DNA of 64,000 nucleotides from Cyanophora paradoxa CCMP329 (GCA_004431415.1 QPMI01000005.1:1-64000), one strand, 5' to 3'. Shown: positions 743-58,459, numbered from the stretch's first letter. Translations and numbers: made by a program. Notes: generated by a model from the sequence alone, not told the origin.

Positions 743-1054
743 TCGCGGCAGGTGCGAAGCCGACGGGTTTCTGGCATCGCTCGCCTGTCGTTCGCTCATT
801 GCTTGCTTGTACCGGCGCGCAGATCCACAGGGCAGCGGGCGAGCGGCCAGCAGATCTAGACAGCACGCGACCGGCGAGGATTTCTGACCGGGCGGGCTCC
901 GTCGGTTCCGAAAGCTCGGCTCTGTTGCGTCAAGGCGATCCGTCGAAGGTGCGCTCCTCCGGGCGGGCGCAGAACCCCGGTTGCTCGCTAGTTGCCGCTG
1001 GGCGGACCCCGCCGGTCTAGAATCTACGAATCGCTTCGAATTCGCTCTGGGCCG
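743..1054 (+). repeat. 5' region shared by the two LRR-TIR paralogues (copy A)
   Basis: Closely matches 9690-10002 (tcgcggcaggtgcgaagccgacggg...cgctctgggccgc). Contains splice-like GT/AG sites, so probably 5'UTR exons and introns. Confidence 0.9.
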
Positions 1055-1472
1055 CACGGTCCACCTAGCAGCGTGCGAGGGGTCGCACTGATCCCACCAA
1101 GCGACGCGGCGGGCGCGCGGACGTTGGCTAAGATGCGGGGCGAGTTGTCGGTGCCGGGCCTGTGGGGGGGGCCCCACGCTCCGGCGTCGCTTGCTGCCTC
1201 GTTCGCCAACCCACGAACGGGGGGAGGGGGGGAGGACCCAGCGCGCGCCCGGGCGTGGGGGTGCAATCTCCCATAGGCCGCCATCGCTCCCCCGAGCCGC
1301 GACTCGGGCGGGGCGGGGCGGCCGGTAAAGGCAGAGCCCGGCGCGCGCGTGCACCGCCCCTGCGGGAGGGGCTCAGCGCGGGCCGGGCGGCCCCCCGCAG
1401 GCTGGGGACCCGCCGGGCGGGGCGGGGGCGCGCTCCCCGCGGCGCGCTTCTGCCGCTGACCGCCCCGCAGGC

Positions 1473-3114
1473 ATGGGCAAGGGGTGGATCCCGGCGGAGG
1501 GGAAGCTGGCCCTGGAGGAGGAGGGGCGGACGGAGTGGCCGGCGGCGGAGATCGCGCGAGCGGGGCCGGCGAACATCCGCGAGCTCGACCTCGGCTATAA
1601 CAAGCTCACGCGCATCCCGGGGGCCGAGCTCGCGAAGCTGACGAACCTGGAGAAGCTGTGGTTGAGCAACAACCGGCTGACGGCGCTACCGCCGGAGATC
1701 GGCCGCCTCACCGCCCTGCGGTGGCTGAACGTGCAGGGCAACCAGCTGACGGCGCTGCCGCCGGAGATCGGCCGCCTCGCCGCCCTGGAGACGCTGGGCG
1801 TGGGTGACAACAAGCTGACGGCGCTGCCGCCCGAGATCGGCCGCCTCGCCGCCCTGAGGTGGCTGGACGTGGGCTTCAACCAGCTGACGATGCTGCCGCC
1901 GGAGATCGGCCGCCTCGCCGCCCTGGAGACGCTGTACGTGAGCGGCAACCCCCTCACGGCCATGCCGGAGCTCCTCAAGAAGAAGAACACGGCTGAACGC
2001 CTCGCATACCTCCGCTCCCTCCCCGCCCCCGCCCCCGCGGTGCGCCCCGCCGCCCCGGCACCCGGCCCCGCCCCTCGCCACCGCGCACTCACCCCGGCCC
2101 CGGCCTCGGCTTCCACCGCGCACTCACCCGCCACCGCAGCCCGCCGCCCCCTCTGCCCCCGGTCCGTGTACCCCGGTGTACCCCCGCCCGTGCTTCCCTT
2201 CCCCCGACGCGAGCCCGCCCCGCAGCGGCGCCCTCTCCGCCGGCCGCCCAGCGCCCCCAGCAGGCGCCTGCTGCAGTCCCGCAGCACCCGCCCCCGCTGC
2301 AGCCGGCCGCCGACGGCAAGGCCTGGGACTGCTTCGTCAGGCGAGTTGCCCGGCCCTCGCCGCTCACCGCAGGCCCTAACGCCGCCGTGCAGCTACGCCC
2401 ACGTCGACGCGGCGCTCGTCTTCCGCTACTGCGACGCCCTCGAGGCCGCCGGCTTCAAAATATGGTTCGCCCCCCTCCAAGGCCTCCCCTCTCCGTGGCC
2501 CCCTCCCCCGCCCCCGCTCCGCTGACGCCCTCGCCCCTCGCAGGGTCGACCGCGAGCTCAAGGCGGGCCAGAGGTGGATGGCCAAGATCGGGGTGCGCGT
2601 CGCCCACCGCTTCGCGCCTTCCAGCGTGCCGAGCGCGCGGGGCGCGGCGCGGGCGCAGGAGGCGATGCAGCGCTGCCGGACGTATGTCTGCTTCCTGTCA
2701 CCGGGGTACATCCGATCCAACAACTGCGACGACGAGGCGCGCCGCGGCCCCCGATTCACGTTCGGGCCGACGATGTTCCTGACCCTCCCGCAGATGCAGT
2801 TCGCCCACCACCAGCTGCGCATCCCCAAGTTCCCCGGTGCGTGCCGCGGCGCGCCCGCCCCGGGCCCTGCGCCCCGCCCCGCCTCACCCTCGGGCGGCAG
2901 TGTGGCTCGTCGACCCCAGGACGGTCGAGCTGCCGGTGGACTACAGGGCGCGCTGCTACCCGCACCCTGCGCTTTCCTGAAATCAGCTTATGCACGTCCC
3001 CAGATGATGCTGGCGTCGGTGAACTGGACGATGCAGCGCGGGGAGGGGGCAGCGGCGGCGGACGCGGCGGCCGGCGACCTGATCGCCGGCCTGCGCGACT
3101 TCCTGCGGCGCTAG
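1473..3114 (+). CDS. LRR-TIR protein (copy A, intact): N-terminal 23-aa LRR array, Pro/Ala linker, C-terminal TIR_2-type domain
   Basis: First coding exon has LxxLxVxxNxLTALPPEIGRL repeats. Splicing at GT/GC-AG sites gives WDCFVSYAHVDAALVFRYCDALEAAGFKIW|VDRELKAGQRWMAKIG|EAMQRCRTYVCFLSPGYIRSNNCDDE|MQFAHHQ...FLRR*. This carries TIR box1 (FxSY) and the alphaC C-x-x-E Glu. Confidence 0.88.
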
Positions 3115-3313
3115 CCGCGCTAGCGGGCCAAGTTGGAGAAAAGCCAGTTGGAGCGTCTGGTTGGTTGGTCTGTTTATATATTGATTCAGTGGGGTAACTT
3201 TCCAATCCAGCTTCGAGTTATGGTAGGCCCCTGATATATATATACATATCTGTCTTAATGTAGCTGATAAATAATACGCCAATACGGCTTAATGTAGCCT
3301 ATACAGGGGAGGG

Positions 3314-3314
<1 letters not shown>

Positions 3315-3407
<93 letters not shown>
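3315..3407. repeat. poly-G tract (~93 nt, one T)
   Basis: Read directly. It abuts the apparent 5' end of the MORN gene. Confidence 0.95.
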
Positions 3408-3408
<1 letters not shown>

Positions 3409-6400
3409 AGGAGGCCACCACCACCGCCGCCACCGGTGCGCCCGCGGAGCCGCGAATGCTCGTCGCGCACATCCTCTGACGATTGGGGACCGCCGCGCAG
3501 CCGCCGGAGGAGCCCGCGCCGCCTCCGCCGCCGCCTGTCGAACTTCCCGTGCTCCCCGAGGTCGATGGAATCCGCGGGGCGGTCGAGGCACGCTGCTCTA
3601 CCACGACGGCGCGAAGTACGAGGGGTGAGCCCGAGCCGCTGCGCCGCGCTCCTCGTGCTCCCGCTTCCCGCGCCGCCGCACCGCCGCCGCACCGCCGAGC
3701 GACCGCCGCGTCCGCTTCCGCGCCCGCGGACCACAGGAACTGGACGAAGGACGTGCGGCACCGGTACGGCACGTACCAGTGGGAGAACGGCGACCTGTAC
3801 GAGGGAGAGTGGGTCGACGATCGGCGCGAGGCGAGCGAGCGAGCGAGCGCGCCGCTCGCTCCGAGGCTCCGCCTCTCCGCCCCTGCTGACCTCCGAGGCT
3901 GCAGGGCTCGGGCCAGATCACGTACAGCGGCGGGGACCGCTTCAAGGGCGCCTTCGTGAACAACCTGAAGCACGGGCCCGGCGAGTACTCCTACGTCAAC
4001 GGCGACCGCTTCGTCGGCGTCTGGGTCAACGACGCGCGGCAGGGCAAAGGTGCGGGGGTGGCGAGCGGGAGGGCGGGATTGCGGGCGCCAGCCGCCCGGG
4101 ACGGTTAGAGTTGATAAAAGGGCACCCAGTGCGAGCAAAGCCTAGACACGCGTGCCGGGCACAGCCTAGACACGCGTGCCGGGCACAGCCTAGTCTTAAG
4201 TCTACGCCACACCTAAGCCTCTTAGGCTATCTCTCCGAGGGCGCCTTCTAAGAGCCTGCTCCTTCTAAGAGCCTTCATCCAGCCTTTAGCGCCCGTTTCC
4301 TGAGCCCAGGCCCCGCAGGCACCTTCTGGTACGCGAACGGGGACCGGTACGAGGGGTACTTCCTCGGGGAGCACAGGAACGGCATCGGTTAGGCTCAGAT
4401 CTCACCTGATCTGATCTGATCTGATCTGATCCGATCGGATCTGATGTTATCTTCGCTCAGGTATGATGCTGTACGCGACCGGGGAGCGGTACCAGGGGCG
4501 CTGGGTAGAGGGGCGCCGCGAGGGCAAGGGCTTCCAGCACCTTCCGAACGGTACCCCCGCCCGTTCTTCCCCCCGTTCATTCCTCCGGCGAGGCTTGTGA
4601 CGGGCGGGGCGGGGGGGTAGGGGATACGTTCGAGGGCGACTTCCGAAACGATTTGAGGCACGGGAGTGGCACGTGCCGCTTCCAGGGCGGAGACGTGCGT
4701 ACCCCTCCTTAACTCCTTCCCCTCCTTGGAGGGGCTTATGAATTGTTTCCCGGGGGGTACAGGTCTACGAGGGGCCGTGGGTAGACGGCCAGATGACCGG
4801 TCCCTCGGGTCTCATGAAGTTCTCCAACGGCGACGTCTACCAGGTACCCGTACCCCACTTCGTCTTCCACCCCCCCCCCCCCGAACCGTCCTGGGGTGCA
4901 GGGCCCGTGGAGGGAGGGCGCGATGGACGGGGCGGGGGGTACGATGACGTACTGGGACGGCCGCGTGTACACGGGCGACTGGCGCCGCAACGTGCGGCAC
5001 GGTGCGAGCCCGTACCCCTCGACTCTTCCACCCCCATTTCTAAAAATAGCGCAGGGCGGGGCGTTATGCTGTACACGAACGGGGACAAGTACGAGGGGGA
5101 GTGGAACCAGGGCGTCCGGCAGGGTCAGGTGGGCCCTCTGCTCCGATCTGATCTGATCTGATCTGATCTGATCTGATCTGATCTGATTTGATCGGATCTG
5201 ATTCGATCTGATCTGATTTTATCTAATATGGCGCGGCGGCGCAGGGCGCGCTCACCGTCGCCGAGTCGGGTAGCCGCTTCTCGGGCGAGTGGCTCGAGGA
5301 CGGCCTCCCCTTCGGTGACCTACCCACCATCCCCACCTTCTAAGCCTCTCAGCTAAGCTTCTAAGCTTCGCAGGGGTGGAGGAGCACCCGAGCGGGGACG
5401 TGTACGAGGGCCCCTTCACGGGCGCCCACGGCCACTCCATCGCCCGCCACGGCCACGGCACCCTCCGGTCCGCGCCGCTTTCTTGGGTCTTGGCCGCCTC
5501 CCCCTCTAGCTTCTTAGGTTTCTGAGCTTCTAATGAAAGGAAGGACTTAGGGCTTCTAAGTACAAGCCGCCTCGCGGCCCACTCGAAGCCGACTAGACTC
5601 GAAGCCCGAAGCTAGCTACTCAGGGCTGATCCGATCCCATCCCATCCAATCCGATCCGATCCTCTCCACTCTCGCGCAGGTTCGGGCCTGCCCTGGGCCC
5701 GGACGGGGAGGTCCTGTACGTCGGCCCCTTCGTCATGGGCGACCGCGACGTGCGCCCCGGCCCCGCCCCCGCCCCGGATTGCCCCCGCTAGATTGAACTC
5801 TAAAAGCTTAACGGACCTAAATGCGAGGCACCGCCCCGCCCGCCCATCCGCCCGGCGCGGCGCGGCGCGGTGCGGCGCGGCGCGGGGCCGCGTTGACCAC
5901 GAAGCGCCCGAGCCTGACTCACGGGGCGGGGCGGGGCGCAGGGCCCCGGGGGCCACGCCGAGTACCGCAACGGCGTCGTCTACGACGGCGGTGCGCCCGG
6001 CCCGGCACGGCGCGGCGCGCATTTCTGCGCCTCGAGAACGGGCCGGGGTCGCCGCCGCTTCTAGAACGGAAGCTCGCCTAGGCGCCTGGCGCCGCGCTGG
6101 CGCGGCCAATACATGGGGCGGGGCTCGCGTCCCTTCGAGCGTCTTCTTAAGAATCTAATAGTTTAATTCCTGGGCGGCTCAAGAGTCTGAAAAGAGCTCG
6201 AAAGCGTTTATTGTCTTCTGAGAGTCGCATGGACGCTGATCGCAAGGGGCCGTCGCTCAGATTTCAAGTCCGGCGCCCGCACCGGCCGCGGCGCGGCGCG
6301 GTACCCCAGGAAGCCCCCGCGCGCCCCCCCGGCCCCCGCCCCGGCCCCAGCAGCGGTCCCGGCTGCTTCCTCTGCGCAGCCTTTTGTCCCCCCCGGCGCC

Positions 6401-7565
6401 TCGCCCTCGCCGGCGCCCTCCCCGCCCGCCTCGCGGCCGGGTACCGCCCCCTCGGAGGCCGCTCAGCCGCCGCCGGCGCCCACAGCGGCGCCCGCGGCGC
6501 CCGCGGCGGCGGAGGGGCGGAGGGGCAGCAGCAGCCCCGCCCGCCCCGCCGAGCCGGCGGCAGAGGAGGAGACCGTCTGGGAGACCTACGAAGGTGCGGG
6601 CGGGCCGCGTACCCCCATTTCTTCCCCCCCCCCATATCCCCGCGCAGGGGACTGGCTCGACAACAAGCGGCACGGCACCGGCACCATGCGCTACATGTCC
6701 GTTACCCCTCCCCCGCCCCCCCCCCCCCCGCTTCCGCCTCATCTGATGCGCCCCGACGGACAGGAACGGGGACGTGTACGAGGGGGAGTGGGCCGGCGAC
6801 TTCAAGTGCGGCCGGGTGCGGCCTGAGCTCAAACCTATTATGAAGCCTAAGCCCAAGAATTAAGAATCTACTAAGATCTAGCTAAGATCTACTATTGAAG
6901 AAAACGACTAAGCCCCTACTAAGATCTATACCAAGGGGGGGCTCGCACCCCCCCCCCCCCCCCCCACCCTCTTGGAACTCAGTCCCCCTCGCCCCGCGCC
7001 GCGCGGCGCCTCTCTTAGACGGCCGGCGCCGCCCCACGCCCTCCTCCTCGCCCCTCCGGGCCCCCCCCCCCCCCCCCCCCCCCTCTCTCTCTCCCCCCTG
7101 AGCTCGAGGGCGCAGGGCCGCGTGCTGTACGCCAACGGCGACGAGTACATCGGCGCCTTCGAGCCGCCCCCGCCCCCGCCCAAGGTCCGCTTCCGCCTGC
7201 GCTAGAGGCCCTTGTATCCAGCTAAGTTTATTGGCGGCTCAGAGTTAAAGGCTCTGAAATCTAAATTTATTAGCGGCTCCTGGTCCGCCGCGCTCGGCTC
7301 CGAGGCCCGCTCCGCCGCGCTTAGCTCACGCCTGCGCCCCGCTCCTTCTATTTATACAAATAGGCCCTTGTATCTAGCTTCATTTATTCACGGCTCACTT
7401 TACTGTCTCCGGCCGCAGCCGGAGACGCCGCCGCCGCCGGCGCCCCCAGCGGAGGCGGCCAAGCCAGCGGAGCCCGAGCCGCCGAAGGAGGCGGCCCCCG
7501 CGCGGCCGGCGAGCCGCTCGGAGGTGGCCCGCAAGACGCCCCCCGCCGGCGCCAAGCGGAAGTAG
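3408..7565 (+). CDS. MORN-repeat protein, multi-exon; 5' end not resolved
   Basis: Many exons encode YEGEWxxxxRxGxGxxxYxNGD motifs (e.g. YGTYQWENGDLYEGEWVDD, TMTYWDGRVYTGDWRRNVRHG, MLYTNGDKYEGEWNQGVRQG). Pro-rich C-terminus ends AGAKRK* at 7565. No clear ATG, and a possible frameshift near 3575. Confidence 0.85.
4125..4235 (+). mobile_element. short intronic dispersed element (copy 1)
   Basis: Shares the 5' end CCCAGTGCRAGC, internal CACGCGTGCC repeats and the 3' end CGCCACACCTAAGCC..TTARGCTATCTCTC with 44775-44874. Confidence 0.6.
5144..5217. repeat. (GATCT)n intronic microsatellite; related tracts at ~4397-4445 and ~5627-5660
   Basis: Read directly. Confidence 0.9.
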
Positions 7566-9689
7566 GCGGGGCGGGCCGGGGCTGTGTCCGCGAAGTGTTC
7601 TTGGAAGTGTGCTTTCTTGGAAGGAAGGAAGCTCAAGGGCCGACCTGGGCTATCCGGGCATGCAGCTAATCATGATCATGAAACAGTCAACGATATCTAG
7701 AATAATCGCTGAGGATCGCCAGCCTCAGAGCTGCAGCTGCAGCTGATCATCATGGCCCAGTGTGGCATCGGATCGTGCCCGTGATCATGACTCGAGCTCG
7801 GCGATCGTGATCAGCCGCTGTGCAGCTGACCGCTGCCAGGCTGATCATCACCGAGTCCGACGGTCATGGGATGCATGACCGTGTGACTCTCAGTGATGGA
7901 TCGGATCACAGCCTGCAGCTGGCAGCCAGCTGCAGGCTGAGTCATGAGCCTCCCGGCGCAGCCTGCCTGGCAGAGCAATTGCAGTGCAGCTGTGGCAGAG
8001 AGCTTCGCAGGTTCACCTCTCGGATCTCGAGGCTGCATGCGCTGTCACGGATCCGGAGTAAGAACACAACTAAAGTAATTACAAGACGCGATCAAAATAT
8101 ATAGACTTCAAACACAACTAGAACTTCGGAATACGGGCAAAAACATAATACGGTGTACAGAATTAAGAGCAAGGGGGTCACGTCGCCTCCGAGGCTCCGA
8201 GGCGGCGTGGAGGGGGGCGGGGAGCGGGCACGGGGGGGTTCCGTGGGAGGATCTGGATCCGCTACATTCAGTCGAGGCGCCGACTCGGAGACGAGGCAGC
8301 TTGGGGGGGAAATCCCGAAAGGCTGCGTGGGACTGCAGCTGGGGAGGTCGGGAGCTAAACGGGCGAGCCTCGAGGGGGGCTAAAAGCGAAGAGGGCCGGG
8401 CGGAAGTGAGCGAAGAGAGGTGGAGCGTAGATCGAGAGGCGGGCCGGGGCGGGGACAGCGAGAGGGACAGGAAAAGGCAGGGGGGGAGGGAGGGGCGGCC
8501 GGGGGAGAGCCGGGGCGGGGACGGCTCAGACGGCTCAGACGGCTCAGATGGCCCCGAGACAGCGGCCCGGGGGCGGCCCGGGGGCGGCGGGGGGGAGAGC
8601 GGGCAGCGAGGCCTGCGGGAGGCGCGGGGGGCCGGCGCCACAAGCCTGCGATCTGCGGGGCGAGGGCGTGGGGGCGAGGCGAGGGCGTGGGGGCGAGGCG
8701 AGGGCGTGGGGGGGGGGGGGGGGGGGGGGGGGGGCGAGGGGGGTAAGCGGGGGTTTGGGGACGAAGGGGTACGGTGTGGCGAGGTGGGCCCTGGTCCCGA
8801 GAAGAAGAGGGGCCGGCGGGAGGGGTACGGGGCGGGCGCCCTCTCTCCTCCGGGCGCGGAGTCTCGGAGGGAGAGGGGGAGGGGCCGGGTCCGGCGGCGT
8901 GCCCGGGGTGCTCGCGCTTCGCGCCTCGGCGTCCTAAGTTAGATGGCCGCCACTCCGCCCTGCCCCGGCCCGGAGTCCGCCTCGCGCTACGCTTCCCTAG
9001 CGACCGCCACTCTCCCTAGCCATAGGGGCGCCGGCGCCGCCCTCACAATCGGCGCTGCGGCGGAGGCGCCCCGCCGTTTCCCGCCGCGCCGCAGCCCGCG
9101 CAGCTGCAGCTGCAGCTGCAGGCCATCGGAGCGCTACGCGATACCGGGTACCGCGGCGCGGCCGCTATATATATAGCTAGCGCTGGCAATCGGACGGCCG
9201 GCGCTCTGCTTCGGCATGGCGTCCGCGAAGCCGGCGTCAATAGTTCAATAGCTAGCGCCAATAGGACGGCCGACGCGAGTGCTCCGGCGCTGTGCTCCGA
9301 TCGATATCCGCCGCTGTGCTCCGATATCGATCCGCCATAGCCTAGCTATAGGCCTCCGCTAGCGCTGCGGCTGCCGGGTCCGAGTCGACGTCGACGTCTC
9401 GCCCGCGTCCCGGTCGCCGAAGCCGGAGACCAGAGCTTCGCTGCTGATTCGGCTGCGTGCTGCTGCCAGTCTGCAGTGGGAAGTACTGAAGTGAAAAGGC
9501 ATGCGCAGCGCTGACAGGTCCGCTCACCACAGCCATATGCATGGAAGCAGCAGTGCCCGAGGTGCGTCCGCACCCCGTACCCCGGCGCTTCGGGCGGCCG
9601 GCCGCGGACGGCGTCGGACGGCCTCGGACGGCGTGTACGTACCGACGCCGCAGAGGGCCTCGGTGTTACGGCGGTGTAGGCGGTGTTTG

Positions 9690-10002
9690 TCGCGGCAGGT
9701 GCGAAGCCGACGGGTTTCTTGCATCGCTCCTGTCGACGTCGTTCGCTCATTGCTTGCTTGTACCGGCGCGCAGCTCCACAGGGCAGCGGGCGAGCGTCCA
9801 GCAGATCTAGACAGCACGCGACCGGCGAGGATTTCTGACCGGGCGGGCTCCGTCGGGCCCGAAAGCTCGGCTCTTCTGCGGGAAGTCGATCCGTCGAAAG
9901 TGCGCTCCTCCGGGCGGGCGCATGGCCTGGATTGCTTGCTAGTTGCCGCTGGGGGGATCCCGGTCTAGAACCAACGAATTCGAATCGCTCGCTCTGGGCC
10001 GC
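9690..10002 (+). repeat. 5' region shared by the two LRR-TIR paralogues (copy B)
   Basis: Matches 743-1054. Copy A has about 400 extra bp before the ATG. Confidence 0.9.
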
Positions 10003-10016
10003 GCGCCCCCGCAGGC

Positions 10017-10847
10017 ATGGGCAAGGAGTGGATCCCGGCGGAGGGGAAGCTGGACCTGGGGGGGAAGGATCGGGAGGAGTGGCCGGCGGCGGAGATCGCG
10101 GCGGCGGGGCCCGAGAACATCCGCTGGCTCGAGCTTTGGGGAAACGAGCTCACGAGCATCCCGGGGGCCGAGCTCGCCAAGCTGACGAACCTGGAGTGGC
10201 TGTGGTTGAGCAACAACCGGCTGACGGCGCTGCCGCCGGAGATCGGCCGCCTCACCGCCCTGCGGTGGCTGAACGTGCAGGGCAACCAGCTGGCGGCGCT
10301 GCCGCCGGAGATCGGCCGCCTCGCCGCCCTGCAGACGCTGTACGTGGGTGACAACAGGCTGACGGCGCTGCCGCCGGAGATCGGCCGCCTCGCCGCCCTG
10401 CAGACGCTGTACGTGGGTGACAACCAGCTGACGGCGCTGCCGCCGGAGATCGGCCGCCTCGCCGCCCTGGAGACGCTGGGCGTGGGTGGCAACCAGCTGA
10501 CGGCGCTGCCGCCGGAGATCGGCCGTCTCGCCGCCCTGCAGGGGCTGGACGTGGAGAAAAATCAGCTGACGGCGCTGCCGACGGAGATCGGCCGCCTCGC
10601 CGCCCTGCGGTGGCTGAACGTGCAGAGCAACCAGCTGACGGCGCTGCCGCCGGAGATCGGCCGCCTCGCCGCCCTGCAGGAGCTGTACGTGTGGAACAAC
10701 CAGCTGACGGCGCTGCCGCCGGAGATCGGCCGCCTTTCCAACCTGCAGAAGCTGAGCGTGGAGAAAAATCAGCTAGCGGCGCTGCCGCCGGAGATCGGCC
10801 GCCTCTCCCGTCTGCAGACGCTGGACGTGAGCGGCAACCCCCTCTGA
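10017..10847 (+). CDS. LRR array of LRR-TIR copy B (276 aa, stops right after the last LRR)
   Basis: Uninterrupted ORF with nine LP(P/T)EIGRL-type 23-aa repeats and an N-terminus paralogous to 1473. TGA at 10845-10847. Confidence 0.85.
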   Translation: MGKEWIPAEGKLDLGGKDREEWPAAEIAAAGPENIRWLELWGNELTSIPGAELAKLTNLEWLWLSNNRLTALPPEIGRLTALRWLNVQGNQLAALPPEIGRLAALQTLYVGDNRLTALPPEIGRLAALQTLYVGDNQLTALPPEIGRLAALETLGVGGNQLTALPPEIGRLAALQGLDVEKNQLTALPTEIGRLAALRWLNVQSNQLTALPPEIGRLAALQELYVWNNQLTALPPEIGRLSNLQKLSVEKNQLAALPPEIGRLSRLQTLDVSGNPL

Positions 10848-11587
10848 ACGCCTGAACGCCTCGGATCCCTCCGCTCCCTCCCCGCCTCCGCCCCCGCCCC
10901 GCGCCCCGCCGCCCCGGCCCCCGGTCCGTGCACCACCCCGGAGCAGCCGGCCCCGCCCTCCCCTCACGCCCCCCCGCAGCGGCCCAGTACGACGTCTCCC
11001 TCTCGCCCTAGCAGACCTCGGCCGGCCACCTCGCCCTCGCCCTCAAGCTCCAGCTCGAGCAGGCCCGCCCCGGCCTCCGCGTCTTCCTCGACGTCGACGA
11101 CTCCCGCCTCGAGCTCCACCAGTGCGCCCCTCTGAGTCGGAGCGCTCGCCGCGCTCTCACCCCAGCCGGCCCCCCGCCCCGCAGGCTCGAGCGGATCATC
11201 GACGCCTCCGCGAGCGTCGTCCTCATCATCTCTCAGGGTCCGTGAGGCTGCCGCCACGTTCCTGCGGCGCCTAATCTTACGGTGCCGTGCAGACGTCCTG
11301 TCGAGCCACTACGTGCTGGGCGAGGTGCGGCACGCGGCGCGGGCGGGGAAGAACATCGTCCTCCTCCACGACGAGAAGTCCCTTCCCCGCTTCCTCGCCC
11401 GTGCGCCCCCGCCCCAGAACCACCCCGCCAGCCAACCGAATTTGATCGCCCCTCAGCGGGGGAGATCCCGTCCGACCTGCGGCTCGTGTTCGCGCGCGTG
11501 GCGATCCCGTGCTACGCCGAGGCGGCCTTCCGGCGGGTCAGCGTCCGGCTCCTGCTCGAGGCCTGCGACGAGGCCGCCCGCCGCTGA
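10848..11587 (+). pseudogene. disabled SARM1-like TIR domain of LRR-TIR copy B
   Basis: In frame beyond the TGA and after splicing: QYDVSLSP*QTSAGHLALALKLQLEQARPGLRVFLDVDD...VVLIISQ|DVLSSHYVLGEVRHAARAGKNIVLLHDEK...AARR*. A second stop (TAG) lies at 11009-11011. Confidence 0.78.
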
Positions 11588-12239
11588 GTGCCCCGCCCGC
11601 CCGCCCCCCGGCCCCGTGCACCTCTTCGCAACCTTCTCATCGACCGCCGCCGCCGGCGTCAGTCTAGAGTCTTCGCCAAAGTCTTTCTCGCGAGTTCCCA
11701 AAGTCTCTTTTCTCCATTAATATTCGTCTTACGAAATTGCCCGCCCCCCTGCCCGGCTCCGGCCCGCCTCCCTCCCCGGCCCTTCCCTCCCCCCTCCTCC
11801 CTCCTCGAGGAGGCCGCGGGTGCTCTCGGGGCTCCCGAGGTTCAGCCCTCCTCCGCGAGGCCCCGCGCTCCGCATCCGCCAAAGTCTTAGATTTCCCTTC
11901 GAATTCGGTTGAATTGTTCAGGCGGCTGGACGTAATTTGTCTTTCCAAATTGTGATTCTTGTCTAGCGGTTCTGTCCTAGCTGCCTAAGAGTCTGTCTTT
12001 GATCATGAGTCTGTCTGTACGATGTTTTTCGGCGAGATCGACTGCCGCAGTGCGAGGGTAGCTCGGGCTCGCGATCGGGGCTCGGGTTAACGTTTGGCCG
12101 CCGGGCAGGCTCAGTGGGATGCCGGAATATATAAGACACAACGCTAACTAGAATAAGGACAAAACCATAGTGCACAGAAGAGCGAGAAATCGCGCTAGAG
12201 TCACGTCGCCCCCGGGGATCACTCGTGTACTAGAGAGAG

Positions 12240-55709: not shown

Positions 55710-58459
55710 ATGGGCAATGAGTCTTCGCTGCTGGTCTTCTGCGGATGCGTGTCGGAGGATCGCCACGCTGCGGTTCGCACGCTGCGGGCCTTCTCGCATG
55801 TCGCAAGGGGCGCTGACCCTCGCGCAGGCCGCCGCGCGTACCGCGCGCTCCGCGACCCAGGCGCCAGTCGGCTCCGCCGAGCCCGACCTTGTGGACATTC
55901 AGCTGTACAATCACGATCTCTTCCTGTGTCACAACGAGTCCGCTGCCGAGCTGGCGGAGCGACTCCGCGCGGAGCTCGAGCTACTGCGTCCGGGGATCAA
56001 GATCCTCGTCAGCAGCGACGTGAGCGGCGCGGGGGAGACTCCCAACTTGATCCAGTCTTCGCGCTGCTTCGCGCTCGTTATCAGCCGAGGTCGTTCCTGA
56101 GGCTCTCGGTCCTGTCCCGCTCCGCGCCCGCCTGACAGCTCGCCCCCGTACAGATGTCCTGAAGAGCGAGCCCGTCGTGCGGGAGATCGTAGAAGCCGTG
56201 AGGCAGAAGCAGAGGATCGTCCTCGTCTGGTTTGCATCGTCCCGCGCCCGCCCGGTCGAACCTAGTACTCCCGACCGGCGCCGTTCACTCTCAGCGACGC
56301 ATGCGCAGGGACAGGCAGAAGTGCCCGTCTTTCCCGGTCGTCCACGCCTCGACGCCCCTGCCGGCCATCGAAGGCACGCCCCCGAAAGACCTGCGGGCCA
56401 TCCTGCAGCGTGTCTTCGTCCTGCAGGCGAGCGCCGCCGCCGCCGCCGCCGTCGCCGCCGCCCAACCTATCCACGGGCCCGCCCGTCCCGCGTTCTGACC
56501 CGCCCGCGCCGGCAGGCCGTGCAATTCTACCGGGCAAAGGAGAAGAGGGATGTTGCCCTGCGCGAGTTTCTGGAGCGGGCGGACCGCGCCACGCCCTTCG
56601 TGTTCGACTGCGTGCGCCCCGGCCCCGGCCGCCCCCCGGCCCCGTCCCCCGCCGCCCTGTCCAGGCCGACTCGGGCGCCGCAGATGCACCACCAAGACGC
56701 CGCTGCCTCGCCCGAGGGATCGGAGCGGGCGCCGTCCCTGGACGGGGTCAGCCAGCTCCCTTCCCTGTCGCGCGCCCGGGGCGCCCGGGGCGCCGGCCCA
56801 CTCGGGGCGCCCGCAGGAGCAGGAAGCGCACTCGGCGACGAGCGTGTGGAGCTCGCGGCCCTCGGGTGGGGACGGCGCCGGAGCGGAGGCCCAGGCTGAC
56901 GACGTGGTGGCCGACGCCCGTGGGCCCCCGCACGGCCTCCGGACCATATGCGAGGCCCTCCGCTCCGCCCGCGACGCCCGCCGCGTCCGCGTCGCCCCCG
57001 GGAGGTGCGTGCGGCTGCTCAGCTCGCTGCTGCGCCTTGGCCGTCACCTGAGCTCATCTGAGCTGGGCAGGTACAAGGAGAACGTAGTGCTGGATCGGGA
57101 CTACCGCGTCGTTGCGGCGCGCGGGGCGGTCCTGGAGGGGACCGACTCCGGCCCCGCGCTGAGCTGCGTCGGCCCCGCGGCGCCCAGCGTGCGGGGCCTG
57201 GCCGTGCGCAGCCGGAGCGGGACGCACCCGGCCGTGCTCGTCGCCGACGGCAGCGCGGCGGTGCTCGAGGCGTGCGACGTGAAGGCAGCCGGCGTGGCCG
57301 GGATCGAGGCGCGGGGCCGCGGGACGCGCCCCACGCTCCGCCGCTGTGTCGTCCACCACTGCCGCGGGGCCGGCGTACGGGTCCACGAGGGCGCGGGGGG
57401 TACCCTCGAGGCGAACGAGGCGCGCCGCCCCCGCCCCCGCCCCCCCTCGAGGGCTGACCGCGAACCGTGCGCGTCAGGTGCACCGCTGCTCAGGCCCCGG
57501 CATCCAGCTGCACGCGGCGCAGGAGGCCGTCGTCCGCGACAACAAGGCGAGCCCCGCGCCTGGCTTCGCCCCGCGCTCTCTGATCTGTATCTGTACCCCC
57601 CGCCGCAGGTCCACGACGGGCGGGGCGCCGGCATTGTCTGCCAGGACTGCGGCTCGGGCTCGATCGAGGGCAACGAGGTGGCGGGGAACGCGCTCGCCGG
57701 CATCGAGCTCAGCGGCAAGTCCTGCTCCATCCTCGTCCGCCGCAACAAGGTGCGAGCGCTCGGCTTCGAGCGGCGCCCGCCCCCGCGCCCGCGCCTCGCG
57801 TGACGGGCGCGGGGCGGCAGGTGCAGGGCGGGCAGGGCCCCGGAATCCTCGCGGCCCTCGAAGCGCACCCCTCCGTCGAGTCGAACGAGGTCGCGGGGGC
57901 GGGCCCCGGCATCCGCGTCGAGACGGGGGCCGACCCCCGCGTCCGCGCCAACGACCTCCGCGGCTGCACCGCCGCCGGCATCGCCGTCGTGGACGGCGGG
58001 CGGGGCGCCTTCGAGGGCAACGACGTGATCGGCGCGGCCGGGCCCGGCGTCCTCATCGAGGGCGGCGGCAGCGCCGTCGTCAAGGCGAACCGCATACGGG
58101 ACGGGAAGGTGCAGGGGGTACTCGTCCAGAGCCGCGGGAGGGGTACGATCGACGGCAACGAGCTGACGGGGAACGCCGGCGCGGCGGTCGCGCTCCAAGG
58201 GGACGGCACGGAGGCGCAGGTCCTCTCCAACTGGATCCACGGGCAGGCGGCGGGCGTCGACGTCAACTGGGGCGCCCGCTGCTCCGTCCAGAAGAACAAC
58301 CTGGAGGGCGTCACAGACCCGTCCTACGCCAAGGCGAGGGGGGTACGCGTGCACGCCGGCGCCCGCGCGGCCGTGAAGGACAACGCGTTCAAGGCCCACC
58401 CGGGGCAGCCGAGGCCCGGCCTCCAGGACCGCATCAGGAAGCTCGTCTCTTTCAGTTGA
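55710..58459 (+). CDS. predicted N-myristoylated SARM1-like TIR domain + right-handed beta-helix (PbH1, FBXO11-like) protein
   Basis: MGNESSLLVFCGC..|..HDLFLCHNESAAELAERLRAELELLRPGIKILV...FALVISR|DVLKSEPVVREIVEAVRQKQRIVLVW. This is followed by TICEAL..RVAPG|YKENVVL and many GIxVxxGGxGxxEGNEV repeats. Confidence 0.8.

Follow-up and report, generated by a model that had tools for sequence, protein, structure and literature searches.

The locus raises the question of how LRR and TIR domains come to stand in one protein. Two genes, referred to here as copies A and B, lie in the window (the whole 64,000-nt stretch of Cyanophora paradoxa DNA that was analysed). A sequence-only reading had proposed that they belong to a modular receptor family, in which a shared 5' cassette and a variable LRR array are placed ahead of interchangeable TIR effectors. 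It must therefore be asked how far the two copies are alike, whether each is an intact LRR-TIR gene, what their TIR domains are, and whether they have sister genes.

The shared 5' half and its boundary

Copies A and B are paralogues on the + strand, 8544 bp apart, and the window holds no further family members besides them. As the sequence-only reading had it, they have upstream DNA, cap and LRR framework in common. The 5' cassette of about 300 bp (A 744-1031, B 9691-9979) is 89-92% identical between the copies (89.4% over 292 nt by blastn) and has no match in Rfam. It is followed in both by the MGKxWIPAEGKL cap. Over its initial 300 nt the coding sequence is 90% identical between A and B, and identity drops further into the LRR array. 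The LRR unit measures 69 nt in both copies, and its residues vary at no other places than the x positions of xxLxVxxNxL. In the N-module, A shares 97% identity with P0001 and B 99% with P0013.

The loss of similarity had been placed within the Pro/Ala linker; it actually occurs further downstream. A/B similarity extends about 75 nt into the linker, is weaker through the following intron (alignment score of 32 for the linker-TIR intron region, against 13.1 +/- 4.5 for shuffled sequences, 1 of 500 shuffles reaching 32), and is gone past the acceptor of this intron. The exon beyond that phase-1 acceptor gives no A/B alignment. The features of both copies are collected in Table 1.

Table 1. Positions of the features of copies A and B, counted from the first letter of the window.
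Feature	Position	Strand	Basis
Copy A, shared 5' cassette: putative promoter, non-coding exon 1 (end 948), start of 5'UTR intron	744-1031	+	blastn against B 9691-9979; MAFFT alignment
Copy A, predicted 5'UTR intron, GT..AG, 522 nt	949-1470	+	homologous intron in B, supported by RNA
Copy A, coding exon 1: cap MGKGWIPAEGKL, 6 LRRs, C-cap GNPLTAMPELLKKKNTAERLAYLRSL, Pro/Ala linker	1473-2175	+	ORF; Pfam LRR
Copy A, exons 2-8: remainder of linker and TLR/MyD88-like TIR (TIR-A)	2226-3114	+	stop-free joined frame; paralogue identity
Copy A, exons 2-8 singly	2226-2340, 2393-2464, 2544-2592, 2659-2736, 2794-2836, 2901-2947, 3004-3114	+	exon model
Copy B, shared 5' cassette; non-coding exon 1 at least 9827-9899	9691-9990	+	MAFFT alignment and blastn; RNA-like contigs over 9827-9900
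Copy B, 5'UTR intron, GT..AG, 115 nt	9900-10014	+	RNA joint 9899>10015
Copy B, LRR ORF: 276 aa, cap and 11 LRRs, ends in TGA 10845-10847	10017-10847	+	ORF; Pfam LRR, E down to 1e-47; alignment to A
Copy B, predicted phase-1 intron, linker to TIR	10924-10979	+	in-frame join ..APAP/AAQYDVSLSP
Copy B, SARM1-like TIR exons (TIR-B)	10980-11121, 11185-11237, 11293-11400, 11457-11587	+	translation; 90% identity to the P0002 TIR

An apparently intact copy A and a decayed copy B

The exon model of copy A (1473-3114, + strand) comprises 8 exons and encodes 405 aa without internal stops, up to the stop codon at 3112-3114. From N to C terminus the product consists of the cap, 6 LRRs, the Pro/Ala linker and the TIR domain; exon 1 matches LRR_4, LRR_8 and LRR_1 of Pfam (E 1e-20 to 1e-25). 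The donor (CGAAG/GTGCGC) and the acceptor (CCCCGCAG/GCATGG) of the putative 5'UTR intron are both homologous to those of B. The loose end of an RNA contig, CAAGGCGATCCGTCGA, is identical to A 931-946 and is joined to ..AG/GCATGG. Some 420 nt without counterpart in B sit inside this intron, between cassette and ATG. For the first intron of the coding region, the sole in-frame GT-AG pair is 2176-2225, so that exon 1 is predicted to end at 2175; a 97-nt insertion in the linker throws the donor homologous to that of B (2162) out of frame. The best-scoring alternative joins need odd GC donors (GCCACC, GCCCCG), and the GT-AG pair was preferred; GC donors are found in three of the seven introns of the model. 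No TM segment was detected in the copy A model (maximum Kyte-Doolittle 19-residue mean, 0.94), nor was a signal-like hydrophobic stretch seen at its N terminus, and N-myristoylation of the MGK start is presumably unlikely, given the consensus. Most probably, copy A still works as a gene and encodes a soluble LRR-linker-TIR protein of 405 aa.

For copy B, read contigs from two DNA runs (X1, X2) and from RNA-like runs, X15 and X18 among them, were examined. The 5'UTR intron shows up as joint 9899>10015 in X15 and X18, and in neither DNA run; its acceptor precedes the ATG by 2 nt. A zero-mismatch RNA contig covers 10496-10607 within the LRR ORF. It can also be observed that the summed depth of DNA contigs climbs several-fold from about 9662, a mere hint of multiple copies.

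Copy B had been taken for an intact LRR-TIR gene, which the contigs contradict. No uninterrupted frame leads from LRR to TIR, the reading frame being broken by TGA 10845-10847 and TAG 11009-11011. The TGA adjoins a 30-nt deletion, seen in the alignment to A, that removes part of the LRR C-cap, an element conserved across the cap-LRR family. The TAG lies in strand betaA of the TIR domain, where copy B reads QYDVSLSP-stop-QTSAGH and an intact paralogue QYDVFLSHKQSSAGH; this strand also carries a Phe-to-Ser change. Zero-mismatch DNA contigs cover the TGA (10779-10886 in X1, 10808-10897 in X2) and, in both runs, the segment 10929-11043 with the TAG. Since both stops are thus present in two DNA runs, copy B is either a fusion that has decayed or a gene for LRRs alone. 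At best, it now yields an LRR-only protein. Splicing the donor GTGAGC at 10827 to the acceptor CCCTAG at 11011 would keep the frame and avoid the stops, but betaA would be lost and the RNA contigs show no such joint.

Confirmation of splicing by RNA is partial: the 5'UTR intron of B is supported, but among the RNA contigs none was seen to link LRR to TIR in copy B, across the joint of intron 10924-10979. The GT..AG joints of the TIR-B introns 11122-11184 and 11238-11292 occur in an RNA-like contig of a paralogue. Over the TIR-B exons, the sequence of the RNA contigs departs from copy B and is that of a paralogue or allele (CGC>GGC at 11066, and after 11381 the SCRFPAP form, as in P0013). The spliced contig over 11036-11381 therefore gives no support to copy B's own TIR exons.

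The TIR domains, the cap-LRR family and known systems

In an exon-by-exon Pfam search, only exon 5 of copy A matched TIR_2 (E 0.019). Such a search is too weak for the short TIR exons, and TIR scores and folds were obtained from paralogue models, P0005 and P0003 standing in for copy A (94% identity to both in the TIR) and P0002 for copy B. Against TIR_2 (PF13676, gathering cut-off 28 bits), P0005 and P0003 score 63.5 and 70.9 bits, and P0002 scores 31.1 bits, barely over the cut-off. Since both TIRs match TIR_2, the opposition of a TIR_2-type to a SARM1-like domain does not hold at the level of Pfam. That the two are of different types, from unrelated lineages, is nevertheless borne out: BLASTP detects no similarity between A-type and B-type TIRs (E = 5.9), and among solved structures TIR-A comes closest to TLR15/2/6/1 and MyD88 (E from 4.5e-5) and TIR-B to SARM1/TIR-1 (E 2.2e-5). 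The intron positions of the two TIRs differ as well, by the exon models and, for two TIR-B introns, by the RNA joints mentioned above.

Structure prediction on the proxies agrees with the HMM scores in identifying the C-terminal parts as TIR domains. For the TIR-A proxy (pLDDT 79.6), the top 28 Foldseek hits in the PDB are all TIR domains. For the TIR-B proxy, the top 34 hits are SARM1/TIR-1; its pLDDT of only 60.8 denotes low confidence, and fold support for TIR-B is therefore weaker. The alphaC Glu is retained in the TIRs of both window copies. In TIR-A it belongs to the motif NCDDE, is found in all 8 sequences compared and aligns with the YEL Glu of TLRs; in TIR-B (VLGEV) it aligns with HKEI of SARM1. 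Judged from these residues, both TIRs might be NADases. The same Glu is present in TLR-type TIRs, although these serve as scaffolds, not as NADases, which makes catalysis by TIR-A doubtful.

The closest proteins to the window genes are all C. paradoxa models (EukProt EP00741). An architecture census found the cap-LRR module in at least 22 gene models of this species, with at least five types of C-terminal end (TIR-A, TIR-B, SAM-TIR, SAM and coiled-coil-RING), so that the family is larger than two and diverse in its effectors, as had been supposed. In 10 public models the cap-LRR module is joined directly to TIR-A or TIR-B, and in 5 more via a SAM domain. The family signature consists of an MG[KR]GWIPAEGKL...WPAAEI..AGP.NIR cap, LTALPPEIGRL-type LRRs and a C-cap/linker ..YLRSLPAP; in the window, the cap is present in both copies, and the C-cap is full in A and shortened by the 30-nt deletion in B. 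The C-terminal types are scattered over the N-module tree, in which P0015 (TIR-A) and P0127 (RING) form a strongly supported pair with near-identical N-modules. TIR-A has other partners too, namely SAM, IBR, beta-helix and myosin-LRR. Members of the family are clustered in tandem. With PADLOC, generic TIR similarity (SAVED_TIR model) was all that emerged, and no defence system was assigned. A literature search that reached few subscription journals turned up no paper about Cyanophora LRR-TIR genes. The GC content and short introns of the region agree with the genome paper (PMC6704402).

The absence of TM, NB-ARC and Roc domains was upheld by the Kyte-Doolittle profile of copy A and by Pfam, which gave no NB-ARC or Roc hit in the family members scanned. 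It is not the unusual feature it had seemed, as metagenomic prokaryotic TIR-LRR and LRR-TIR proteins pair LRRs (units about 50% identical) with TIR_2 and likewise lack NB-ARC and TM. These proteins differ in having no cap, Pro/Ala linker or introns, and the TIR comes first in P0010, P0036 and P0095, the order LRR then TIR being found only in P0071. Bacterial TIR-LRR proteins are already described in the literature (PMC7145615). As far as sequences tell, the pairing of TIR and LRR without NB-ARC or TM is not unique to Cyanophora.

Each of the eukaryotic systems resembles the family in part. SARM1 and C. elegans TIR-1 (ARM-SAM-SAM-TIR NAD+ hydrolases) are close to TIR-B in sequence (about 24-26% identity at the E-value given above) and predicted fold, the catalytic E642 and the GKNIV strand being aligned, and sister genes carry LRR-SAM-TIR. 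They differ in that an LRR array replaces ARM, the copy B type lacks SAM and has a Pro/Ala-rich linker, and the TIR-B copy of the window is broken by two stops; Pfam gave no ARM or SAM hit in TIR-B type proteins, which thus do not have the SARM1 architecture. Toll-like receptors and MyD88 (PF01582/PF13676) match TIR-A best, and in Toll-like receptors the LRRs are also N-terminal to the TIR. Copy A, unlike these receptors, has no TM helix, its LRR-TIR spacer is the Pro/Ala linker, the LRRs of the family are of the intracellular 23-residue SHOC2/Roco-like kind, and the gene has short GC-rich introns; some LRR search hits bear the source name SHOC2, and others have Roc/COR domains. Plant TNLs (TIR-NB-ARC-LRR) likewise combine cytosolic TIR and LRR, with the alphaC Glu and with clusters of variable LRRs and pseudogenes, but the Cyanophora genes lack an NB-ARC/STAND ATPase, have the order LRR then TIR, and their TIRs are not plant-type. 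Finally, the sister members P0048, P0077, P0127, P0129 and P0067 end in coiled-coil and RING, or in SAM, as in E3 ligases of the LRSAM1 type, with their LRR-coiled-coil-(SAM)-RING layout. This resemblance is architectural only, and A and B themselves do not share these ends.

Origin and possible working of the family

Taken together, the two copies are probably members of a lineage-specific, tandemly clustered C. paradoxa family of modular origin, A being a working gene and B a decayed fusion. Each member would have a conserved promoter, a non-coding first exon and a 5'UTR intron, followed by one long coding exon for the cap, a variable count of 23-residue LRRs, the C-cap and the Pro/Ala linker. 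The LRR scaffold would be invariant, with varying residues on its concave face, and alternative sets of 3' exons would follow the phase-1 intron. Tandem duplication may have given rise to the family, together with exon shuffling or gene conversion for which the intron that follows the linker was the site. In copy B, the same sensor exon would have been joined to a SARM1-like TIR, and the fusion later decayed by the 30-nt deletion, the TGA and the TAG.

Concerted evolution could account for the shared 5' half without shuffling, if cassette, cap and first LRRs of old LRR-TIR-A and LRR-TIR-B genes had been homogenised by gene conversion. A/B identity indeed peaks (about 90%) in the cassette and the initial 300 nt of coding sequence and drops into the LRR array, P0015 and P0127, with their almost identical N-modules, are neighbours, and the family is clustered in tandem. 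Yet the boundary of homology is an intron, 3' of the LRR C-cap and of part of the linker, and the module is common to at least five C-terminal types. We regard conversion as the sole cause as possible but less probable than a modular origin; shuffling and conversion may both be at work.

If the modular family is functional, the LRR face would bind a ligand, which would relieve autoinhibition or cluster the protein; self-association of the TIRs could follow, and with it NAD+ cleavage or signalling, of the kind known from SARM1, plant TIRs and bacterial TIRs. By this analogy, the proteins might be cytosolic sensor-effectors of an immune or cell-death type. Tentatively, they may represent a glaucophyte innate-immune-type system that is cytosolic and free of STAND ATPases, in which a rapidly varying LRR sensor exon with its own conserved promoter/5'UTR cassette was shuffled, at a phase-1 intron, onto a TLR-like TIR, a SARM1-like TIR, SAM-TIR or RING. 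Were this true, it would be a combinatorial receptor repertoire, NLR- or TLR-like in logic but built differently.

A non-immune role is rather unlikely in our view. The fusions would then be real, but would act as regulated NAD+-consuming or scaffold proteins in stress, cell death or development, with an autoinhibitory or partner-binding LRR. This would suit the proximity of TIR-B to SARM1, a metabolic sensor, the ends in SAM-TIR and coiled-coil-RING, known from SARM1 and from proteins of the LRSAM1 type, and the CaaX-like tail (CSVQ) of some members (P0003 and P0015). Against it speak the variation focused on the concave LRR face, the varying LRR number (6 versus 11), the tandem clusters and the frequent pseudogenes, all of them typical of receptor families that are subject to diversifying pressure (NLR, VLR, TLR).

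It is more improbable still that LRR-only and TIR-only genes are merely adjacent and the fused models prediction artefacts in stop-poor, 70% GC DNA: the LRR ORF of copy B does end in TGA before the TIR, its LRR-to-TIR RNA joint was not seen, the genome also has models for LRR alone (P0126) and for TIR alone (P0121, P0143), and the genome's models are said to need manual curation (PMC6704402), but copy A has a stop-free LRR-linker-TIR path and no ATG-led TIR ORF of its own, the family has the 10 directly fused and 5 SAM-linked models, the phase-1 join of linker and AAQYDV in copy B is in frame, as for a former fusion, and nothing suggests a further promoter cassette ahead of the TIR exons.

Animal TLRs and plant TNLs are both built around the pairing of LRR and TIR, and it is debated in the evolution of immunity where this pairing originated and how many times. 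The modular family couples a soluble LRR straight to a TLR-like or SARM1-like TIR in a glaucophyte, that is, in an early-branching lineage of Archaeplastida. If functional, it would indicate that sensor-TIR coupling is possible without an oligomerising ATPase, and would offer a natural set of chimeras, the same sensor on different effectors, for the study of how TIR activation is controlled. The value of the locus itself is more modest: with one apparently intact and one decayed member, it documents birth-and-death turnover in the family.

Two paralogous cap-LRR genes and their common 5' cassette

The anatomy of the LRR-TIR pair is real, and the locus holds one apparently intact TLR-like LRR-TIR gene (copy A) and one broken SARM1-like copy (copy B). 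The sequence-only reading had described two paralogues about 8.5 kb apart that have in common some 310 bp of upstream DNA, an N-terminal cap and an LRR framework, and this description holds. A direct-repeat search put the copies 8544 bp apart, with an identity of 90% in the first 300 nt of coding sequence, and found a further upstream repeat of 225 nt at 92% identity, which alignment and blastn extended to about 290-300 nt. Both ORFs open with the same cap (A, MGKGWIPAEGKL...; B, MGKEWIPAEGKL...), followed by 23-residue LRR units, of which A has 6 and B 11. In the 13 canonical units, LTALPPEIGRLAAL hardly changes, and every variable residue is an x of xxLxVxxNxL. Such a distribution is that of a variable concave face on a constant scaffold.

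Contigs from four sequencing runs, X1 and X2 of DNA and X15 and X18 of RNA-like type, were aligned to 9500-11900. A GT..AG joint, 9899>10015, is found in both RNA-like runs and in neither DNA run. Thus, the cassette contains a first exon without coding sequence, which spans at least 9827-9899, and the beginning of a 5'UTR intron. In both copies, the ATG lies 2 bases past the acceptor of this intron (..CAG, then GCATGG; 10015-10019 in B, 1471-1475 in A), so that the first exon is non-coding throughout. In two additional RNA contigs, different first exons are joined to the same acceptor. The loose end of one, CAAGGCGATCCGTCGA, corresponds exactly to copy A 931-946; the A-type first exon, whose last base is 948, is thus spliced likewise. 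The 5'UTR intron thereby implied in A encloses the about 420 additional nt that separate cassette from ATG in this copy. The loose end of the second contig has no match in the window and must stem from a paralogous gene. From about 9662, the summed depth of DNA contigs, which is not copy number, climbs several-fold; this rise is compatible with a multicopy cassette. An Rfam search of the cassette returned no match.

Coordinates of the features of the locus
Feature	Position	Strand	Basis
Cassette, copy A	744-1031		alignment and blastn
Implied 5'UTR intron, copy A	949-1470		loose end of an RNA contig
Copy A exons	1473-2175, 2226-2340, 2393-2464, 2544-2592, 2659-2736, 2794-2836, 2901-2947, 3004-3114	+	paralogue-guided model
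MORN-repeat gene between copies A and B	3480-7200	+	Pfam MORN in ORFs 3483-3959, 4793-5161
Cassette, copy B	9691-9979		alignment and blastn
Copy B 5'UTR intron, 115 nt	9900-10014	+	RNA-like joint in X15 and X18
Copy B TGA	10845-10847		zero-mismatch DNA contigs
Copy B putative phase-1 intron	10924-10979
Copy B TAG	11009-11011		zero-mismatch DNA contigs
Copy B open TIR exons	11185-11237, 11293-11400, 11457-11587

An apparently intact copy A and a broken copy B

The exon model of copy A was guided by the public paralogue models P0005 and P0003. Its joined exons encode 405 aa without stops, and its introns measure 50-79 nt, with four GT and three GC donors. In the TIR part, the model shares 94% identity with P0003 and P0005. 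The joined protein served for frame and identity only; TIR family scores and folds come from the paralogue models. Exon by exon, Pfam gives strong LRR matches in copy A and a marginal TIR_2 match, in exon 5. Intron 1 is the weak point of the model: a 97-nt linker insertion in A shifts the donor homologous to that of B (2162) out of frame, and the sole canonical in-frame pair is GT 2176 with acceptor 2225. The absence of a TM domain, claimed from the sequence, is confirmed for this model, where no TM-like segment is found (maximum Kyte-Doolittle 19-residue mean, 0.94). P0003 and another TIR-A model, P0015, run on beyond ..FLR, their tail closing with EKSCSVQ, which resembles a CaaX box; copy A ends at FLRR, and 3115-3160 after its stop contains a possible tail remnant (..KLEKSQLE..).

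Copy B is not an intact LRR-TIR gene. A TGA terminates its LRR ORF. In the alignment with A, B has lost 30 nt coding for the family-wide C-cap (TAMPELLKKK), and TGAACGCC is duplicated. The linker past the TGA stays in frame, and the phase-1 intron would join it in frame to AAQYDVSLSP-stop-QTSAGHLALALK. A TAG occupies the Lys position of the intact paralogue P0002 (QYDVFLSHKQSSAGH), and the betaA core Phe is replaced by Ser. Zero-mismatch DNA contigs cover the TGA (10779-10886 in X1, 10808-10897 in X2) and the TAG (10929-11043 in both runs), so that neither stop is an assembly error. No stop interrupts the other TIR exons, which share 90% identity with P0002.

Introns 11122-11184 and 11238-11292 appear as GT..AG joints in RNA-like contigs. 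The contig with the TIR-B joints shows CGC>GGC at 11066 and an SCRFPAP form past 11381, both as in the public model P0013, and is hence to be assigned to a paralogue or allele. In the X15 and X18 contigs, the LRR and TIR parts of copy B are nowhere joined, and RNA depth is zero across 11444-11524. The B-specific LRRs at 10496-10607 are covered by a zero-mismatch RNA contig, so the LRR part is transcribed. We read copy B as an LRR-TIR fusion that has decayed and may persist as a gene for the LRRs alone; the family does include models of this kind, for instance P0126. At 11382-11395, every X1 and X2 DNA contig differs from the window by a 3-nt deletion and 2-3 substitutions (SCRFPAP instead of SLPRFLAP) and agrees with it in all other bases as far as the end of the following intron. 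The discrepancy reflects either variation between strains or alleles or a local misassembly of the window.

Two TIR types and the boundary of homology

The C-terminal parts had been read as TIR domains of different types, with different intron positions and an alphaC Glu, and each of these points is upheld. With Pfam TIR_2 (cut-off 28), the TIR-A proxies P0005 and P0003 score 63.5 and 70.9 bits and the TIR-B proxy P0002 31.1 bits. The best solved sequence matches of the TIR-A proxies are TLR15/TLR2, TLR6, TLR1 and MyD88 (E from 4.5e-5), and the NCDDE Glu lines up with the YEL Glu of TLRs. The P0002 TIR matches those of SARM1 and TIR-1 (E 2.2e-5), with VLGEV over SARM1 HKEI and GKNIV conserved. 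In Foldseek, the best 28 PDB matches of the TIR-A AlphaFold model (pLDDT 79.6) are all TIR domains; the TIR-B model is of low confidence (pLDDT 60.8), its best 34 matches still being SARM1. BLASTP between the two types gives E = 5.9. Under the exon models, TIR-A introns lie in betaA (phase 2), at the betaB end (phase 2), in alphaB (phase 0), directly past the Glu (phase 0), in betaD (phase 1) and past DYR (phase 0), and those of TIR-B before betaA (phase 1), at the alphaB start (phase 2), past betaC (phase 1) and past betaD (phase 1); no position coincides.

Similarity between the copies was said to be lost in the Pro/Ala linker; in fact, the loss follows the acceptor of the phase-1 intron behind it. 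A/B DNA similarity extends beyond the LRRs, about 75 nt into the linker. The linker-intron region scores 32, versus 13.1 +/- 4.5 for shuffled sequences (1 of 500 shuffles equally high), and the exon 3' of the acceptor gives no A/B alignment. The homology boundary therefore lies at this intron. Such a position is compatible with exon shuffling, of which it is no proof.

The cap-LRR family and the surroundings of the pair

The family extends beyond two members and has varied C-termini, as the sequence-only reading anticipated. Searches yielded the cap-LRR module in at least 22 models of C. paradoxa, whose C-terminal parts are TIR-A (5), TIR-B (5), SAM-TIR (4), SAM (1), coiled-coil-RING (4) or other (3). 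An LRR-SAM-TIR model with a divergent cap, P0142, came from the TIR-A profile search and is outside the 22. The models occur in mixed clusters on tig00000841, tig00000532, tig00000042 and tig00000600. Outside Cyanophora, the cap gave one weak match only. As far as gene models go, the modular-family reading is supported.

On the N-module tree (93 columns; short and poorly resolved), C-terminal types change 14 times, for a minimum of 7 and a shuffled mean of 15.4. P0015 (tig00000600_g2261, TIR-A) and P0127 (tig00000600_g2263, RING) are near neighbours with almost identical cap and first LRRs; their near-identical N-modules group with support 100/99. Recent swapping of C-terminal parts would yield this picture, as would gene conversion between neighbouring genes.

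Searched with the TIR-A profile, 1.84 billion representatives again yielded best relatives from C. paradoxa, with architectures including LRR-SAM-TIR. Unusual TIR-A-type models combine a myosin head, LRRs and TIR (P0137), BBS1 and TIR (P0133, possibly a merged model), SAM, TIR and IBR (P0136), or TIR and a right-handed beta-helix (P0132/P0134). LRR and TIR without NB-ARC or TM also occur together in metagenomic proteins, as TIR-LRR in P0010, P0036 and P0095 and as LRR-TIR in the single case of P0071; the combination is not unique. TIR-LRR is mentioned for bacteria (PMC7145615). Our literature search found no paper on these Cyanophora genes, on which the genome paper is silent (PMC6704402). We infer that the family could have a cytosolic immune sensor-effector role and NADase activity.

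The window has a G+C of about 70%, and many introns of 50-80 nt break up its coding regions; the C. paradoxa genome has 67.6% GC and 9.2 introns per gene (mean 86 bp), with the identifier style of the EukProt models (PMC6704402). The LRR ORF has its closest proteins exclusively among EukProt EP00741 Cyanophora paradoxa models (tigNNN_gNNN.t1), and identity to the window's genes falls short of 100% in every public model compared. The window therefore represents another assembly, allele or paralogous copy, from C. paradoxa or an organism very close to it. Introns of the MORN gene contain GATCT-type microsatellites (4374-4450 and 5116-5232). Long C-rich/G-rich low-complexity tracts (3269-3465 and 8425-8819), translating as poly-Pro or poly-Gly, are grouped by the repeat finder as one family, D2. 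Finally, tblastn with the TIR + beta-helix protein P0132 gives a weak match of its C-terminal part at 58013-58171 (+) (47% identity, E 1.4e-8).
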